The notes: generated from the sequence alone by a model not told the origin. A DNA stretch of 64,000 nucleotides from Histomonas meleagridis 2922-C6/04-290x (GCA_020184695.1 JAANOX010000014.1:302149-366148); one strand, 5' to 3'; positions 25,726 through 45,173 are shown, counted from the stretch's first letter. A program made the numbers and translations.

Positions 25726-26947
25726 TCATATAACCGCTTTGCTTATCTTTTTGATAGGGCGGCGACCGTTTCCACGTCGTTTATCTGCTCTCGCAACGAT
25801 AGAATGTTCGTGGCGCATTTTGTGTTGCATAAATGATGCTGCAAGTGGCTGTGACTTTTGTTGACGTTTAGATAAAATCATATGTGTAATACTACTACTA
25901 TTAGAATGTCCATTATTACTATCTAAATTACTATTATTACTCGTAGTATCGGAATATGTCGTAATAAGAGTTTGGCGATAATTTTCTGATATTTGAATAA
26001 CTTCTTTTTCACGTGAAAGTAAATAATATGATACAGTTTCATTATTAATAAATTCATTACCATGTAAAAATGAGATTTTATTCGGATCTAATGAATATTT
26101 AGGAAATTTTTGGATAATTTCTTGATCAATTTCAAATGAATTACCATTAATAAATGGATAATGAACTTGCGTAAACCATGGATGCTGAACAATCTTTTCA
26201 AGTGTAATACGTTCAATAGGTGATTTCTTAAATATTTGTGTTAAAAGATCACAAAGTTCATATGAAAAATATTCTGGATATTCTGGTTCTGTATTGATGA
26301 TTGAAAATACTAAAAGACCTGCATTATTACCACGAAATGGTAATGTCCCTGAACACATTAAATATAATAAAACACCTAAACTCCAGATATCACTCATTGT
26401 AGAAAATGGTTCTCCATTAAGAACTTCTGGTGAAAGATATCCAATATGACTATATGAATCATGTAAAATAGATTTATCATTTTGAATGTTGACTTAAACT
26501 AAACCCTGTGAATCGAATATGAAAATAATGATCAAAAAGAACATTCTTAGAACAAAAGTCACAATGAACTAAACCTTGGTCTCGTAAATATTTAACTGAT
26601 GAAACTAACTGTGAAAAATATAATAATGACGTTTCTTCGGTTAATTTTTCATTATTAATGATAAAATTCGTTAACTCCCCGTTCTCTAAAAACTCATGAA
26701 CTAAGTAAAAATTTTGTTCATCTTGAAAATAATCAAATAATCGATTAATAAAAGGATGGTGAAGATTACGTGTAATATTAACTTCATTCTCGATTTTTTC
26801 TCGAAGTTGATGAACTTCGTCTAAATTTTTGGGATAAATTTTGACAATTACGATGATCCCTGTAGGTTTATGTGTTGCTTTCATAATTCGATAATTCTCG
26901 CCTTGTGTTAAACACCCTAAAAATTCATAATTACAAAGTTTTTCCAT
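25726..26947 (-). pseudogene. CAMK/SNF1-like kinase homolog with one frameshift (copy 2)
   Basis: ORFs 26477-26998 and 25726-26397 join into ~406 aa if one extra base near 26480 is removed (CATTCAAAATGAT versus CATTTAAATGAT in copy 1). Confidence 0.75.
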
Positions 26948-27848
26948 TGACTTTTTTATATTTCGAACGTTAAGAATAAAATTATCAATCGCTCTCAATT
27001 TAGAAACCGTAATGTTTGTTGTAAAATTTAATGTTCTTCGGCTGAAAGTTGTATGGAATAAATAGCTTTAGAAAATTATTCATGCTAAACAAAAACAACA
27101 TTCACTTATAATTTCTAATGAGTAATTAATATACATCGAGCAGAAAACATGTAAATACATTTCATTAAAAAAACATTAATGTTTTCTAAAAATATTTTTA
27201 CTAACTATCTATTAGTTATCATTATTCAGGCTAATTCGAACAATTTGGAAATAAGCTTGAAATTGTTATGATATTTTTCTTCTCGAATACTGTAAGTTAA
27301 ATTGTTAAAAAAATTTGAGCAGTAAGTGTTCGAATATATGTACATTTTATAATCAGTATTTTTTACTTAAATTTCAAATAATCTTATTCAATTTTGAATA
27401 AAAAAACAAATATATGAATTGATTAATATTCACTAAATTAAATATTATACACAAATAAGAATTTCAAAAAAATCAATGCAAAAATCTGGAAAATATATTT
27501 TTCATTTCGAAATGATACCATGTGATATTTGTGCCCCAAGTAAAATATTCAAAAAGTAATGTTAACCACTGGACAACAAAAAGTGCCTAATCGTTAGTCA
27601 TTGTTCTGAATACTGCTGTCAATTTGACAATACCAGTAAAATAAAAATGAAAATATCTTAACATATTATCAATATAATTTGTTTATACTGTTAACTAATA
27701 TATACAATTTGTTTTTTATCATTTTTAATGAACTATTAATAAGATATTTCTTTAATTTTAAAATATATTCTTGTTTCTTAAAAAATGATATTTGAGAGCA
27801 TTCGTTGCAGTCGTGCTATCAAAATTCAATACATCGATTTCCAAAAAA

Positions 27849-28757
27849 ATGTTTGCGTTTTTACTTGCATTAGGTGCATCAGTAACAACGTACACCGTCA
27901 AATCCGGCGACACACTTTCAGGAATCGCTGTTAAATTCGGTGTTACTGTTTCACAACTTTGCTCATGGAACGGAATTTCAAATCCCAACCTTATCTATGT
28001 TGGCCAAGTTCTTAAAGTTTCTGCTAGCAGCGGTGGTGGCAGCAGCGGCTCATACACAACATACACAGTTAAGTCTGGTGATACCCTTTCAGCTATTGCT
28101 GCAAGATACGGCACAACAGTCTCAGCAATCTGCTCCCTCAATGGCATTTCAAATGCTAACCTTATCTATGTTGGTCAAGTTCTTAAGATCCCAGGCGGCA
28201 GCAGCCCACAACCAACAGCAGCTCCACAACCAACATCAGGATCATCAGTTACAGCTTCCCAAATGCAAAGATTCGGATGGGTTGACACATCATCAACAGT
28301 TATCAACGACTTAAACAGCTGCCTTAGCAGATTCGGAATCACAAACCGTCAATCACGTCTTCACTTCCTTTCACAATGCGCTCACGAATCAGGTCTTGGT
28401 AAGTGGACTAAGGAACTCGCAAGTGGTTCAGCATACGAATATCGTTCCGACTTAGGAAACATTTATGCTGGTGATGGACCAAAGTATAAGGGTGGTGGTT
28501 ACATCCAATTAACAGGCCGTTACAACTACCAACAATTAGCCAACTACCTCGGTGATCAAAACGTCATGCAAGGTGTCGACTATGTTGCCACCCACTATCC
28601 ATGGACATCCGCTGGCTTCTGGTGGTACAGGAACGGAATGAACACACTTTGCGCAAACGGCGCTACAGTTGAGCAAGTTACAAAGAGAGTTAACGGCGGC
28701 TACAATGGTCTTGAATCACGTAGAGCCTACTACAACAAGGCATGTGGAATCTTCTAA
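27849..28757 (+). CDS. Secreted 2xLysM + glycoside hydrolase family 19 (chitinase/lysozyme-like) protein
   Basis: Signal-like [11 protein letters not shown]; two [12 protein letters not shown]...YVGQVLK LysM repeats; GH19 motifs [25 protein letters not shown] and [13 protein letters not shown]. Confidence 0.93.
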
Positions 28758-29205
28758 ACTGGCTCCTTTACTTTAATTTTGGAAATCGAATTTGTGCAGA
28801 TTAATTGAAATGTGTTTAATTAAGATTGCAACCAAAATGTATCTGTTTATTGTGTTGAATGTGTGCGAAATTGATATAAATACTTATGTTTTCGTGAGAT
28901 AAATCCCATTTCGCTTCTTTCTTGATCAAGAAATGAATGTGGTGCAGTTTCAATTTGTATGAGGTGTAAATCGGCGGTTATTTATTGGCTGCACAAAATT
29001 GAGAGGCAACGGTTTATACGTCAATCTGACGAAATGGTTTTTTTTAAAACATAAATTTCTCGACATGAAGAAGAAAACCAGTAAATTTAGTCGAAATGTT
29101 TTTTAAATAACAAAAATTATGTGTAATATTATAATAAGTTTTGATGATTTTGATTATTCTAAGATATAAACAAATTTTTATTTTTGAAAGCATTAAGTCA
29201 AAAAA

Positions 29206-30132
29206 ATGTTTGCGTTTTTGCTTGCATTAGGTGCATCAGCATCAACGTACACCGTAAAGTCCGGCGATACCCTTTCCGGAATTGCCAAGAAGTTCGGTGT
29301 TACCGTTTCCCAATTATGTTCATGGAACGGAATTAAAGATGCTAACAAAATCTATGTTGGCCAAGTTCTTAAAGTTTCAGCCAGCAGTGGTGGTGGCAGC
29401 AGCGGCTCATACACAACATACACAGTTAAGTCTGGTGATACCCTTTCAGCTATTGCTGCAAGATACGGCACAACAGTCTCAGCAATCTGCTCCCTCAATG
29501 GAATTAAGAATGCCAACAAAATCTACGTAGGTCAAAAACTTAAGATTCCAAGCGGCGGATCAAAGCCTCAACCAACAGCAGCTCCAAAACCAACATCAGG
29601 TGGTGGTGGCAGCGGATCAACTGTTACAGCATCTCAAATGAAGAAGTTCGGATGGGTCGACACATCATCAACAGTTATCAACGACTTAAACAGCTGCCTC
29701 AAGAAATTCGGAATCACAAACCGTCAATCACGTCTTCACTTCCTTTCACAATGCGCTCACGAATCAGGCCTTGGTAAATGGACTAAGGAACTCGCTAGCG
29801 GAAAGGCTTATGAAGGACGTAAGGACTTAGGTAACACTCAACCAGGTGATGGTCCCAAGTATAAGGGTGGTGGTTACATCCAATTAACAGGCCGTTACAA
29901 CTATCAAGCATTAGCTAACTATCTTGGTGACCAAAAAGTTATGCAAGGTGTCGATTATGTTGCTAAGCACTATCCATGGACATCTGCCGGTTTCTGGTGG
30001 TACAGAAATGGAATGAACACACTTTGCGCAAACGGCGCTTCAGTTGAACAAGTTACAAAGAGAGTTAATGGTGGTTACAACGGCCTTGAATCACGTAGGA
30101 AATACTACAACAAGGCATGTGGAATCTTCTAA
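29206..30132 (+). CDS. Secreted 2xLysM + GH19 protein, tandem paralog (Lys-rich)
   Basis: Same architecture and catalytic HES motif as 27849-28757. Confidence 0.93.
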
Positions 30133-30357
30133 AGCAGTTCTTGCTTTTGATTTCTTTTGAGAAAGCAAACCAAAATGATCTCAAATTAGCTCAATAAACT
30201 AGTGAAGATCAAAAACTTTTCCAATTTCATGCCGCTATATCAGAGACGACGAAAACTTTTTCTGTGATAATCCACTTTTCAAATGTAAAGAAAACAACAT
30301 TTTGAGTTATTTTTTCAGAGGAAACCGTGGTCACTTCACATTATAATTGAACGTGTT

Positions 30358-30399: not shown

Positions 30400-31581
30400 A
30401 TGACTAATTACGCTCAAGAATCACTTAAGCTTCATCAAAAGCTCAGAGGTAAGCTCGAAATCGTTTGCCGTGCCCCAGTTACAAACAAAGAAGAATTATC
30501 CCTTGCTTATACACCTGGTGTTGCCCAACCATGCCTTGAAATCCAAAAGAACGTCGATCTTTCTTACGAATTAACAAGAAGGTGGAATACTGTCGCTGTT
30601 GTTACTGATGGTACTGCTGTTCTTGGCTTAGGTGATATCGGACCAGAAGCTGGCATGCCAGTTATGGAAGGAAAATGCGTCCTTTTCAAGTCCTTTGGTG
30701 ATGTTGATGCTATCCCACTTTGCATCCGTTCCAAGAATGTTGAAGATATTTGCCGTACTGTTGAATTATTAGCTGGTTCCTTCGGTGGTATCAACCTTGA
30801 AGATATCAGCGCTCCACGTTGCTTCGAAATCGAACGCCGCCTTAAGCAAACATGTGACATTCCAATCTATCATGATGATCAACATGGTACAGCTGTTGTT
30901 ACACTTGCTGCTCTTACAAATGCCCTTCGTATCGTTGGAAAGAAGATCGAGGATATCAAAGTCGTTACATCTGGAGCTGGTGCTGCAGGTATTGCTATCA
31001 TCAAACTTTTAATTGCTCGTGGTCTTAATCCAAAGAATGTTATCATGACCGATCGTATGGGAGCTATCTATGAAGGTCGTGAAGGTCTTAACCCAGAGAA
31101 GGAAGAAATCGCCAAGATCACAAACTCTGAAAAACTTTCTGGTTCACTTGCCGATGTTCTTAAGGGTGCTGATGTCTTCATTGGTGTTTCTGCTCCAAAG
31201 ACAGTCACTAAGGAAATGGTTAAGTCAATGGCACCAAATGCAGTTCTCTTCCCAATGGCTAACCCAACACCAGAAATCATGCCAAACGAAGCACTTGAAG
31301 CAGGTGCTGCTGTTGTTGGTACAGGACGTTCTGATTTCCCCAACCAAATCAACAACGTTCTTGCATTCCCAGCAATCTTCCGTGGTGCACTTGATGTTCG
31401 TGCTAAGGATATCAATGATGAAATGAACATTGCTGCTGCTAATGCAATTGCTGACCTTGTTTCCCCAGAAGAACTCAACAAGGATTACATCTTACCTAAG
31501 CCATTCGACCCACGTGTTAAAGATGCCGTCAGTAAAGCAGTCGCTGAAGCAGCACGTAAGTCTGGAGTTGCAAGAATTTAA
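30400..31581 (+). CDS. Bacterial-type NAD(P)-dependent malic enzyme (short ~390-aa form)
   Basis: LSLAYTPGVA, VTDGTAVLGLGDIG, PVMEGK, INLEDISAPRCF, HDDQHGTA, GAGAAG, TGRSDFPNQINNVLAFP. Confidence 0.96.
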   Translation: MTNYAQESLKLHQKLRGKLEIVCRAPVTNKEELSLAYTPGVAQPCLEIQKNVDLSYELTRRWNTVAVVTDGTAVLGLGDIGPEAGMPVMEGKCVLFKSFGDVDAIPLCIRSKNVEDICRTVELLAGSFGGINLEDISAPRCFEIERRLKQTCDIPIYHDDQHGTAVVTLAALTNALRIVGKKIEDIKVVTSGAGAAGIAIIKLLIARGLNPKNVIMTDRMGAIYEGREGLNPEKEEIAKITNSEKLSGSLADVLKGADVFIGVSAPKTVTKEMVKSMAPNAVLFPMANPTPEIMPNEALEAGAAVVGTGRSDFPNQINNVLAFPAIFRGALDVRAKDINDEMNIAAANAIADLVSPEELNKDYILPKPFDPRVKDAVSKAVAEAARKSGVARI

Positions 31582-43055: not shown

Positions 43056-43445
43056 GGTTGTTTTTCACAGACTTCGTTTGAATCGGAGTCTATCATGTTT
43101 CGAAACATGAAACAATATCAATCTCCATTTCTCTGCTTTAAAAAATTATTCGCGATATTTACATAATGTAAACATTGGAAGATTTTGTATTGATTTTAAA
43201 TATTTAATCTTTTTGCTGCTCAATTTTAAAAAAATTTGAAAGCTTGACAATATTTAATGACAAAATGATAAAAACTTTATATTAAAAACAATTTATGTAA
43301 TTGTTTAATGCTTTGATGAGCATAATGATGATTTTGAATCCTATTTGTGCCAGACTACAATTGAGTTAATTTTATTGAAAATTGCTTTGGCCATACAACT
43401 TTTTGAATTGAAATGTGGCCGCATGGTCGTGTTTCATTTTCTTTG

Positions 43446-45173
43446 ATGTCCTCGAAAGCTCCTGAACTTCCAGAGGGATATACAATTGATTCCGAAGGTG
43501 TTTACCATGACCCAGATGGTAATGTTGTATCTAAGTCTAAAATCAAAGCAGTTTTAAAAGCACAAAAAATCGCTGCAAACAAAGCAAAGAAGCAAGCTCA
43601 ACAACCACCCAAAAAGCAAGGAGAATCAGAGAAGCTTGAGGAACTTGATGAAAAGCAATATTATGAACGCAGACTTGCATTAATTACTCAACAATTAAAA
43701 GCAGCTCGTGCAGATAAATCTCTTGTTTCTCCATACCCACACTACTTCCCAGTCTCACACTCCATTCCAAAATACATAGAAGAATTTAGTGGCTTACAAA
43801 ATGGAGAAGAAAAGCCTGAAATCCCAGTTAAAGTTGCTGGTCGTATTTACAACATCCGTAGCTACGGAAAACTTCATTTCCTTGATTTATATGATGGTGA
43901 AAAGAAACTTCAACTTCTTTGCCGTGCTCAAAGCTGGCATGACACCTCCAAATTCAAGGACGAATTTGCTCGCTTTTACCTTGGTGACATTGTTGGCGCC
44001 GAAGGTTTTCCATGCCGCACAAAGAATGGTGAGCTTTCAGTTTGCTGCACAAATCTTACCTTACTTACACCATGCCTTCATCAATTACCACATTCTGTTA
44101 AAGACACAGAAGTTAGGTATCGTCAACGTTTCCTTGATCTCATTGTTAATAGAAAGAATCGTGAAATCTTTGAAAAGCGTGCTACAATCATTCGTGAGTT
44201 TAGACATTTCCTTGATGATCATGGCTTTATCGAAGTTGAAACACCAATTATGTGGCAATCTGCAGGTGGTGCTACAGCCAAACCATTTATCACACATCAC
44301 AATAGCCTCGATATTGATCTTTGGCTTCGTGTTGCACCAGAACTTTTCTTAAAGATGTGCGTTGTTGGTGGTATGAACCGTGTTTATGAAATCGGTCGTA
44401 ACTTCCGTAATGAAGGAATGGATCCAACACATAACCCAGAATTCACATCATGTGAATTTTACATGGCTTATGCAGATTACAACTTCTTAATGAGTTTCAC
44501 TGAAGAACTTCTCAGGAACGTTGTAATGAAAGTTAAAGGATCACTTAAATTTGATATTGATACTCCAAATGGAAAGGTAGAAATTGATTTCGAAAAGCCT
44601 TTTGGTCGTATTGACATGATTGCAGAACTTAAGAAACATGTTGGTGAACTCCCACCACTTGAGGATACAGAGGAAACTCGTAAGTATCTTGATGACCTTT
44701 GCGTTAAGTATGATGTTGAAGTTACACCACCACGTTCTGTTTCAAGAATGCTTGATAAACTCGTTGGCCACTTTGTTGAACCACAATGCATTAATCCAAC
44801 ATTCTTAATGAACCATCCACAAGTTATGTCTCCACTTGCTAAATGGCATCGTGATCTCCCAGGACAAGTTGAGCGTTTCGAATTGTTCATAAATGGCTTA
44901 GAATACTGTAATGCTTACACAGAACTTAATGCACCAATGGTACAACGCGAACTTTTCCTTGATCAAATTAAGCAAAAGGAAGCTAATGATGACGAAGCAA
45001 TGCCATACGATGATACTTTCTGCACTGCTTTGGAATATGGACTTCCTCCAACTGCTGGATGGGGACTTGGTATTGATCGTCTTACAATGCTTCTTACTAA
45101 CCAAGAATCAATTCGTGAAGTTTTATTATATCCATTAATGAAACCTCTTGATTCAACTGAACAAAAACAATAA
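43446..45173 (+). CDS. KARS1: Lysyl-tRNA synthetase, class II, cytosolic
   Basis: [68 protein letters not shown] 43446 follows the Inr-like TCATTTT; ATG 43413 is an alternative start. Confidence 0.97.

Follow-up and report, generated by a model that had tools for sequence, protein, structure and literature searches.

The GH19 enzymes described from Trichomonas were acquired laterally from bacteria and include class A proteins, without a binding module, and class B proteins, with two SH3b modules (Hart et al. 2025, PMC12612818). HPLC-MS analysis of digested peptidoglycan identified two of the Trichomonas SH3b-GH19 proteins as muramidases without chitinase activity, and an E-to-Q mutant was inactive (PMC12612818). 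The same study stated that SH3b-GH19 is unique to the genus Trichomonas, named homologues in Histomonas, separately mentioned LysM domains in non-Trichomonas homologues, and left chitin activity open for GH19 proteins without SH3b (Hart et al. 2025, PMC12612818). GH19 muramidases are also lateral-transfer candidates in all five trichomonads covered by a 2026 preprint, including Histomonas (10.64898/2026.10.12.758501).

In Histomonas itself, a LysM protein with a GH19 domain was noted by Monoyios et al. 2018 and tied to bacterial wall degradation or chitin (PMC6250841), and the roles proposed by the Histomonas authors include binding of host extracellular matrix or mucin, and cyst chitin (PMC6250841, PMC9610433). 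Two proteins, KAH0804812 and KAH0804813, were detected in the proteome, surfaceome and exoproteome of the parasite (PMC6250841, PMC9610433). Both are SignalP-positive and are lower in the proteome of the attenuated strain and higher in that of the virulent strain (log2 -2.43 and -1.77), and the published qPCR gave a Ct about 4 cycles below that of Fe-hydrogenase (PMC9610433).

We analysed a 64-kb window of the poultry parasite Histomonas meleagridis 2922-C6/04-290x, with all coordinates counted from its first letter. The two intact tandem genes claimed in a preliminary description of this DNA were borne out. Both ORFs lie on the + strand: copy 1 occupies 27849-28757 (302 aa) and copy 2 occupies 29206-30132 (308 aa), and they share 89% protein identity and 86.6% DNA identity. 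Their features are listed below.

27843..27848, + strand: 5' UTR of copy 1, 6 nt; transcript 5' end at 27843, from the adapter-joined cDNA contig of run X5 and the starts of X1 and X2 contigs
27849..28757, + strand: coding sequence of copy 1, 302 aa, 32.2 kDa, net charge +9, corresponding to KAH0804812
27849-27887, + strand: predicted signal peptide of copy 1, about aa 1-13
27888-28019, + strand: LysM1 of copy 1, aa 14-57
28000..28130, + strand: probable gene-conversion tract over LysM2, 98-100% DNA identity to 29357-29487 of copy 2 (sliding identity; dS 0.11)
28059-28193, + strand: LysM2 of copy 1, aa 71-115
28194-28262, + strand: linker of copy 1, aa 116-138
28263-28754, + strand: GH19 domain of copy 1, aa 139-302
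28386..28415, + strand: putative catalytic glutamates of copy 1, E180 (GAA 28386-28388, AHES motif) and E189 (GAA 28413-28415)
28758..28776, + strand: 3' UTR of copy 1, about 18 nt, with a poly(A) site near 28776; the loose end of the X5 contig passes into an A run after ACTTTAA
29200..29205, + strand: 5' UTR of copy 2, 6 nt, from the start of X2 contigs at 29200
29206..30132, + strand: coding sequence of copy 2, 308 aa, 32.7 kDa, net charge +23, corresponding to KAH0804813
29206-29244, + strand: predicted signal peptide of copy 2, aa 1-13
29245-29376, + strand: LysM1 of copy 2, aa 14-57
29416-29550, + strand: LysM2 of copy 2, aa 71-115
29551-29637, + strand: linker of copy 2, aa 116-144
29638-30129, + strand: GH19 domain of copy 2, aa 145-308
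29761..29790, + strand: putative catalytic glutamates of copy 2, E186 (GAA 29761-29763) and E195 (GAA 29788-29790)
30133..30150, + strand: 3' UTR of copy 2, 18 nt, with poly(A) after 30150; the loose end of an X2 contig passes into 19 A

The window is AT-rich, with GC mostly at 0.16-0.35 and a GC-richer stretch of 0.40-0.43 at 28-32 kb. A eukaryotic contig of 600 kb carries the GH19 pair, which has AT-rich flanks and is neighboured by a protein kinase on one side and a malic enzyme on the other. The malic enzyme, at 30400-31581 (+) directly 3' of the pair, is of the bacterial NAD(P) type and short (393 aa), and corresponds to KAH0804814; its GC is raised, as is its C-ending codon bias (0.56). 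On the other side, the CAMK-type protein kinase at 25726-26998 (-) is broken into two ORFs: within a run of A near 26476-26480 (TCAAAATGATAAA) its frame shifts by 1 base, and the kinase motif HIGYLSPEVL goes on in the other frame. An intron was rejected as the explanation of this gap because of the 1-nt frame change in the A run; the break is either a homopolymer sequencing error or a pseudogene. A scan for bacterial promoters and terminators did not outscore shuffled sequence, which is what one expects of eukaryotic DNA.

Both genes could be matched to the published annotation. The published order of KAH0804812, KAH0804813, KAH0804814 (NAD-dependent malic enzyme) and, further on, KAH0804819 (lysine-tRNA ligase) is the order in the window, where LysRS was confirmed at 43413-45173. 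The published weight of KAH0804812, 32.2 kDa, equals the computed weight of copy 1, and the published qPCR oligonucleotides match the window exactly (forward 28118-28136, probe 28191-28208, reverse 28269-28288), the probe and the reverse primer being specific to copy 1. Copy 1 is therefore KAH0804812, on the agreement of weight, gene order and qPCR primers and probe, and copy 2 is KAH0804813, on the agreement of gene order. The preliminary description had left it open whether the system had been described. It has been: the genes figure in the Histomonas proteomics papers and the family was published in 2025 (PMC6250841, PMC9610433, PMC12612818). The genes are thus already known from annotation and three proteomic data sets, and the origin and enzymology of the family have been published as well. 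The proteomics papers concern the same genes, with no sequence difference. There the two proteins figure as putative factors of virulence or adhesion, and their tandem arrangement, catalytic residues, transcript ends and phylogeny are left unanalysed.

Public sequencing runs were mapped on 27700-30300. In a contig of a 2013 cDNA library (X5), a SMART-type template-switch adapter and a G run are joined exactly at 27843. Since this cDNA 5' end lies 6 nt before the ATG of copy 1, a TTG-started ORF at 27792 is not the true start. The initiator (Inr) is a known start-site element of trichomonads; the transcript start of copy 2 at 29200 comes directly after GTC, so that its context reads TCA(+1), and we infer that this GTCA context resembles the Inr. 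The transcripts of both copies are polyadenylated and carry 6-nt leaders. Contig k-mer depth reaches thousands to tens of thousands over both coding regions, and is 0-2.5 over the spacer in one run and 658 in another. The X1 contig 28729-29378 (depth 658) spans the intergenic spacer, reflecting either read-through transcription or DNA in the library. A chicken-gut metatranscriptome contig contains a fragment of copy 1.

The C/(C+T) ratio in two-fold pyrimidine codons is 0.74 and 0.68 for the two genes, the strongest in the window, compared to 0.56 for the malic enzyme, 0.41 for LysRS and 0.09-0.39 for most other ORFs. The genes are thus C-rich, as had been observed earlier, but more strongly so than LysRS, to which they had been likened. 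The very high expression and the strongest C-ending codon bias fit each other, and we read the bias as the host-type bias of highly expressed genes, not as a relic of a recent transfer.

The modular architecture that the preliminary description had drawn, namely a signal-like N-terminus, two LysM repeats, a P/T/S linker and a GH19 domain retaining the glutamate of the HES motif, was recovered. The N-terminus is hydrophobic in both copies, disordered in the AlphaFold model and SignalP-positive in the literature (PMC9610433). Two stretches per copy matched the Pfam LysM model (PF01476, E about 1e-42) and belong to LysM / CBM50; in the model they show the beta-alpha-alpha-beta fold, with strands (E) and helices (H) at E14-16/H23-30/H34-41/E54-56 and E69-73/H80-86/H91-98/E111-115, and the LysM domains of 4uz2 were among the Foldseek matches. 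The linker is present in both copies as a P/T/S/G segment, of low confidence and disordered in the AlphaFold model. Pfam found no SH3b in either copy; hence neither belongs to class A or class B of Hart et al. 2025, and LysM-GH19 is a third architecture beside these classes, already mentioned for non-Trichomonas homologues (PMC12612818).

The C-terminal domain of 164 aa was earlier likened to the bacterial or phage endolysin-like GH19 subtype, and the searches agreed: it matched PHROG 181 'endolysin' at 3e-36 and, in the PDB, the GH19 endolysins 9ms7 (1.5e-24), 9hqw (mycobacteriophage LysA, 2.9e-19) and 4ok7 (SPN1S, 3.4e-14), while true chitinases in the PDB reached E values of 1e-3 to 0.07 at best. 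AlphaFold pLDDT was 89-98 across the domain, and its predicted fold is lysozyme-like, largely alpha-helical and of GH19 type; the best Foldseek match was 9ms7 (TM 0.73), followed by other GH19 endolysins and then by chitinases (TM 0.58-0.67). The Pfam model PF00182 (Chitinase class I) scored 12.8 and 16.4 bits, below its gathering cut-off of 25.5, and NCBIfam gave no match for the catalytic domain. Because PF00182 stays below its cut-off, the GH19 call rests on the PHROGs, PDB and fold matches. The Pfam GH19 model is mostly built on chitinases; in the precomputed lists, PF00182 is also absent from the close bacterial relatives of this subtype, and only a more distant myxobacterial group has it. 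In our reading the Pfam model is not sensitive enough for this subtype, and its low score does not speak against the fold.

In an alignment of 44 homologues, the glutamate of the AHES motif and a second glutamate 9 residues on are invariant, and T228 of copy 2, the conserved Thr/Ser of the QLTGR segment, is nearly so. Every invariant residue of the catalytic domain, including both glutamates, is kept in both copies. The 9-residue spacing, and the roles of the HE[S/T] glutamate as general acid and of the downstream glutamate as general base, we take over from SPN1S-type endolysins.

For phylogenetic analysis, the GH19 domain was taken from 191 homologues for a quick tree, and a careful tree was built from 82 sequences and 164 columns. 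The quick tree held an 83-row group with a support of 81. In the careful tree, copy 1, copy 2, a third Histomonas paralogue on another contig (P0006) and a metagenome sequence (P0003) form one clade (100/99). It groups first, at 81/87, with a Histomonas SH3b-GH19 (P0085) and the sequences of T. foetus and Blattamonas; T. vaginalis follows at 82/82. The catalytic domain thus lies among Firmicutes sequences and metamonad GH19s, distant from plant chitinases, and the lateral acquisition put forward in the preliminary description agrees with this placement; the copies fall, with moderate support, within the laterally acquired metamonad GH19 clade of Hart et al. 2025. The backbone of the tree is poorly resolved, with the bootstrap not converged and Monocercomonoides and Hexamita in a polytomy, and the putative donor can be named only as 'Firmicutes-like'.

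The best annotated non-protist full-length matches are Bacillales LysM-GH19 proteins (56-58% identity), which form a separate clade (89/89). Forcing the Bacillales and Histomonas clades together costs 83.8 log-likelihood units (AU p 0.00135), and by this test a separate Bacillales-type transfer of the whole LysM-GH19 architecture was rejected. The transfer is neither Histomonas-specific nor recent: Histomonas has the family in common with Tritrichomonas, Trichomonas, Blattamonas and Monocercomonoides.

In copy 2, the GH19-proximal LysM shares 87% identity with the only LysM of Monocercomonoides exilis and 91% with that of a metagenome LysM1-GH19, versus about 69-73% for named bacterial LysM and at most about 80% for unnamed metagenome LysM among the proteins compared. 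This high LysM identity across metamonads suggests that the LysM-GH19 fusion is common to metamonads and was not assembled separately in Histomonas. The Histomonas protein P0085, encoded on another contig, is an SH3b-SH3b-GH19 (SH3_3 at E 2e-34) with a catalytic domain 76% identical to that of copy 2; SH3b-GH19 is therefore not limited to the genus Trichomonas, against the statement of Hart et al.

P0003, the nearest relative from outside (83% identical), lies on metagenome contigs of about 1 kb without gene context. Dozens of further LysM-GH19 and SH3b-GH19 sequences on metagenome or metatranscriptome contigs of about 1 kb (within P0019-P0129) cluster with metamonad sequences; the sources of such metagenome proteins are probably unsampled gut protists. 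One metagenome protein, P0060, has both LysM and SH3b. An ESNG / ENGY(I) motif, at times preceded by RRHRH, follows the signal peptide in P0142, P0010, P0020, P0048 and P0007; its bearers are T. vaginalis SH3b-GH19, Monocercomonoides, Blattamonas and metagenome LysM-GH19 proteins, not the Histomonas copies, and these proteins may have in it a common propeptide or sorting signal.

Similarity between the two units of the tandem pair is confined to the CDS and about 15 nt upstream, and the flanks are unalignable. Between copy 1 and copy 2, dS is 0.43 and dN/dS 0.18, and within the gene dN/dS is lowest in the GH19 domain, at 0.13; such values point to an old duplication with both copies under purifying selection. 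In the tract 28000-28130, dS falls to 0.11 versus 0.47-0.55 elsewhere, and this tract is probably a gene-conversion patch over LysM2. In the GH19-domain tree, the first to branch off is copy 2, and copy 1 lies nearer to P0006 and P0003 (88/88); there are therefore younger duplicates than the two tandem neighbours.

The replacements between the copies are biased in charge: of 28 positions, 17 have lysine in copy 2 and none has lysine in copy 1 (two-sided sign test, about 1.5e-5). The charge per residue of copy 2 is above the 95th percentile of the 191 homologues, and net charge is +2 in the third paralogue, +9 in copy 1, +18 in the SH3b form and +23 in copy 2. Polarisation of the lysines with outgroups was mixed: about 6-7 were gained in copy 2 and about 5-6 were lost in the lineage of copy 1, and the idea that copy 2 gained all its lysines was rejected on this ground. 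That this Histomonas charge series reflects specialisation for different bacterial envelopes or compartments, and that LysM-GH19 rather than SH3b-GH19 is ancestral in metamonads, is a tentative proposal that we hold to be rather doubtful; the link from charge divergence to different bacterial targets is speculation. If it were true, the polycationic form might, for example, reach peptidoglycan through Gram-negative outer membranes or bind teichoic-acid-rich walls.

Taken as a whole, we consider it likely that the two copies are secreted modular peptidoglycan hydrolases, lysozyme-like in action, that go back to an old acquisition from bacteria or phages. A signal peptide of 13 residues would have the protein exported or sent to the phagosomal route, the two LysM (CBM50) modules would hold the enzyme on GlcNAc-containing glycan strands, and the flexible linker would join them to the endolysin-type GH19 domain. 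There, E186 and E195 of copy 2, or E180 and E189 of copy 1, would cut the beta-1,4 bond between MurNAc and GlcNAc in the manner of a lysozyme-like muramidase. The likely role would be to degrade the walls of bacteria on which the parasite feeds, or to compete with the microbiota. The family would have entered metamonads long ago from Firmicutes-like bacteria or their phages, and would since have been inherited, duplicated and re-fitted with different wall-binding modules.

The antibacterial reading given in the preliminary description gains support, by analogy, because the assayed Trichomonas muramidases, which are of the SH3b type, belong to the same metamonad GH19 group (PMC12612818). The GH19 domain of the copies is 68% identical to that of the T. 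vaginalis SH3b-GH19 TVAG_021240 (P0142), to which a mapping of the published TVAGG3_0677660 was not achieved. By the same analogy, we infer for the Histomonas copies muramidase rather than chitinase activity, and bacterial walls would be their biological target.

LysM binds chitin as well as peptidoglycan and the GH19 family includes many chitinases, to which the fold matches extend (TM 0.58-0.67), so that the copies might instead be chitinases or dual chitinase/lysozymes acting against fungi, in the remodelling of a cyst-like stage with chitin or on host glycans rich in GlcNAc, for example mucin. Chitin, cyst and mucin roles were discussed by Monoyios 2018 and Ramires 2022 (PMC6250841, PMC9610433), and Hart et al. 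leave chitin activity open for GH19s without SH3b (PMC12612818). We nevertheless hold this to be improbable: in sequence, endolysins match better than chitinases by about 20 orders of magnitude, the short, loop-poor domain of 164 aa is of the endolysin subtype, and a chitin wall in Histomonas is undocumented in the literature cited here. Moreover, the sole assayed metamonad GH19s are muramidases that showed no chitinase activity (PMC12612818). The antifungal alternative of the preliminary description is the less likely one. A role mainly as surface lectins or adhesins, binding bacteria or host matrix via LysM with catalysis secondary or lost, would suit the enrichment of the proteins in the biotinylated surface fraction and their increase in the virulent strain (PMC9610433); the retention in both copies of all invariant catalytic-domain residues, including both glutamates, and the lowest dN/dS of the gene in the GH19 domain leave it very little probability.

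Bacterial contamination, or a very recent acquisition specific to Histomonas, might be suspected from the local GC of 0.40-0.43 versus about 0.25 around it and from the Bacillales LysM-GH19 proteins as best annotated non-protist full-length matches. It is refuted, and we give it almost no credence: the genes lie inside a long eukaryotic contig, their transcripts are polyadenylated with 6-nt leaders, their codon bias is like that of the highly expressed genes of the host, closer relatives exist in other metamonads, and a common clade with Bacillales was rejected by the AU test.

On the favoured reading, that of secreted peptidoglycan hydrolases, the pair has a bearing on the biology of the parasite. 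Histomonas requires bacteria for growth, in vitro as well as in the bird. A secreted, wall-cutting pair, highly expressed and more abundant in the virulent strain, would be a plausible part of feeding on, or reshaping, the caecal microbiota; for trichomonads, this idea of bacterial feeding and microbiota effects has already been published. With its divergent charges, the tandem pair is a natural experiment in substrate range, and the LysM module common to Parabasalia and Preaxostyla bears on the age of the LysM-GH19 fusion. Our additions to what is published are small: the grouping among metamonad GH19s with the AU rejection, the likeness to the Monocercomonoides LysM, the SH3b-GH19 of Histomonas, and the charge divergence.

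Several known systems are close to the Histomonas copies. With Trichomonas class B (SH3b-SH3b-GH19; T. gallinae TGA_001274700 and T. vaginalis TVAGG3_0677660) they have in common modules for wall binding, a GH19 domain of endolysin type that carries the pair of catalytic glutamates, a bacterial origin and membership of one metamonad cluster; the signal peptide of class B has its counterpart in the predicted one of the copies (PMC12612818). They differ from it in that class B has two SH3b modules and has been assayed, whereas the Histomonas copies have two LysM modules and form a tandem pair of divergent charge. The GH19 endolysins of phages and prophages (PWe2, 9ms7; SPN1S, 4ok7; PaGH19Lys, 9eoi; mycobacteriophage LysA, 9hqw) have the same catalytic fold and Glu-x8-Glu pair and are the best sequence and structure matches, the closest solved structures all being peptidoglycan-cleaving. 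Phage endolysins, however, act inside the bacterium at lysis and are without a signal peptide, whereas the Histomonas proteins would be secreted by a eukaryote and carry LysM. The LysM-GH19 proteins of Bacillales and Lactobacillales (Vagococcus fluvialis P0037; Bacillus sp. SM2101 P0005) have the same LysM(n)-linker-GH19 order and 56-58% full-length identity, but their catalytic domains form the separate clade whose union with that of Histomonas was rejected. The T. vaginalis NlpC/P60 peptidoglycan endopeptidases are said, in the work of Pinheiro in 2018 and Barnett in 2023, to be laterally acquired, secreted and used against bacteria. The parallel lies in the logic of an acquired, secreted wall hydrolase, but fold and target bond are unrelated: as cysteine peptidases, the NlpC/P60 enzymes attack the peptide stem, whereas the Histomonas GH19 enzymes would cut the glycan strand.
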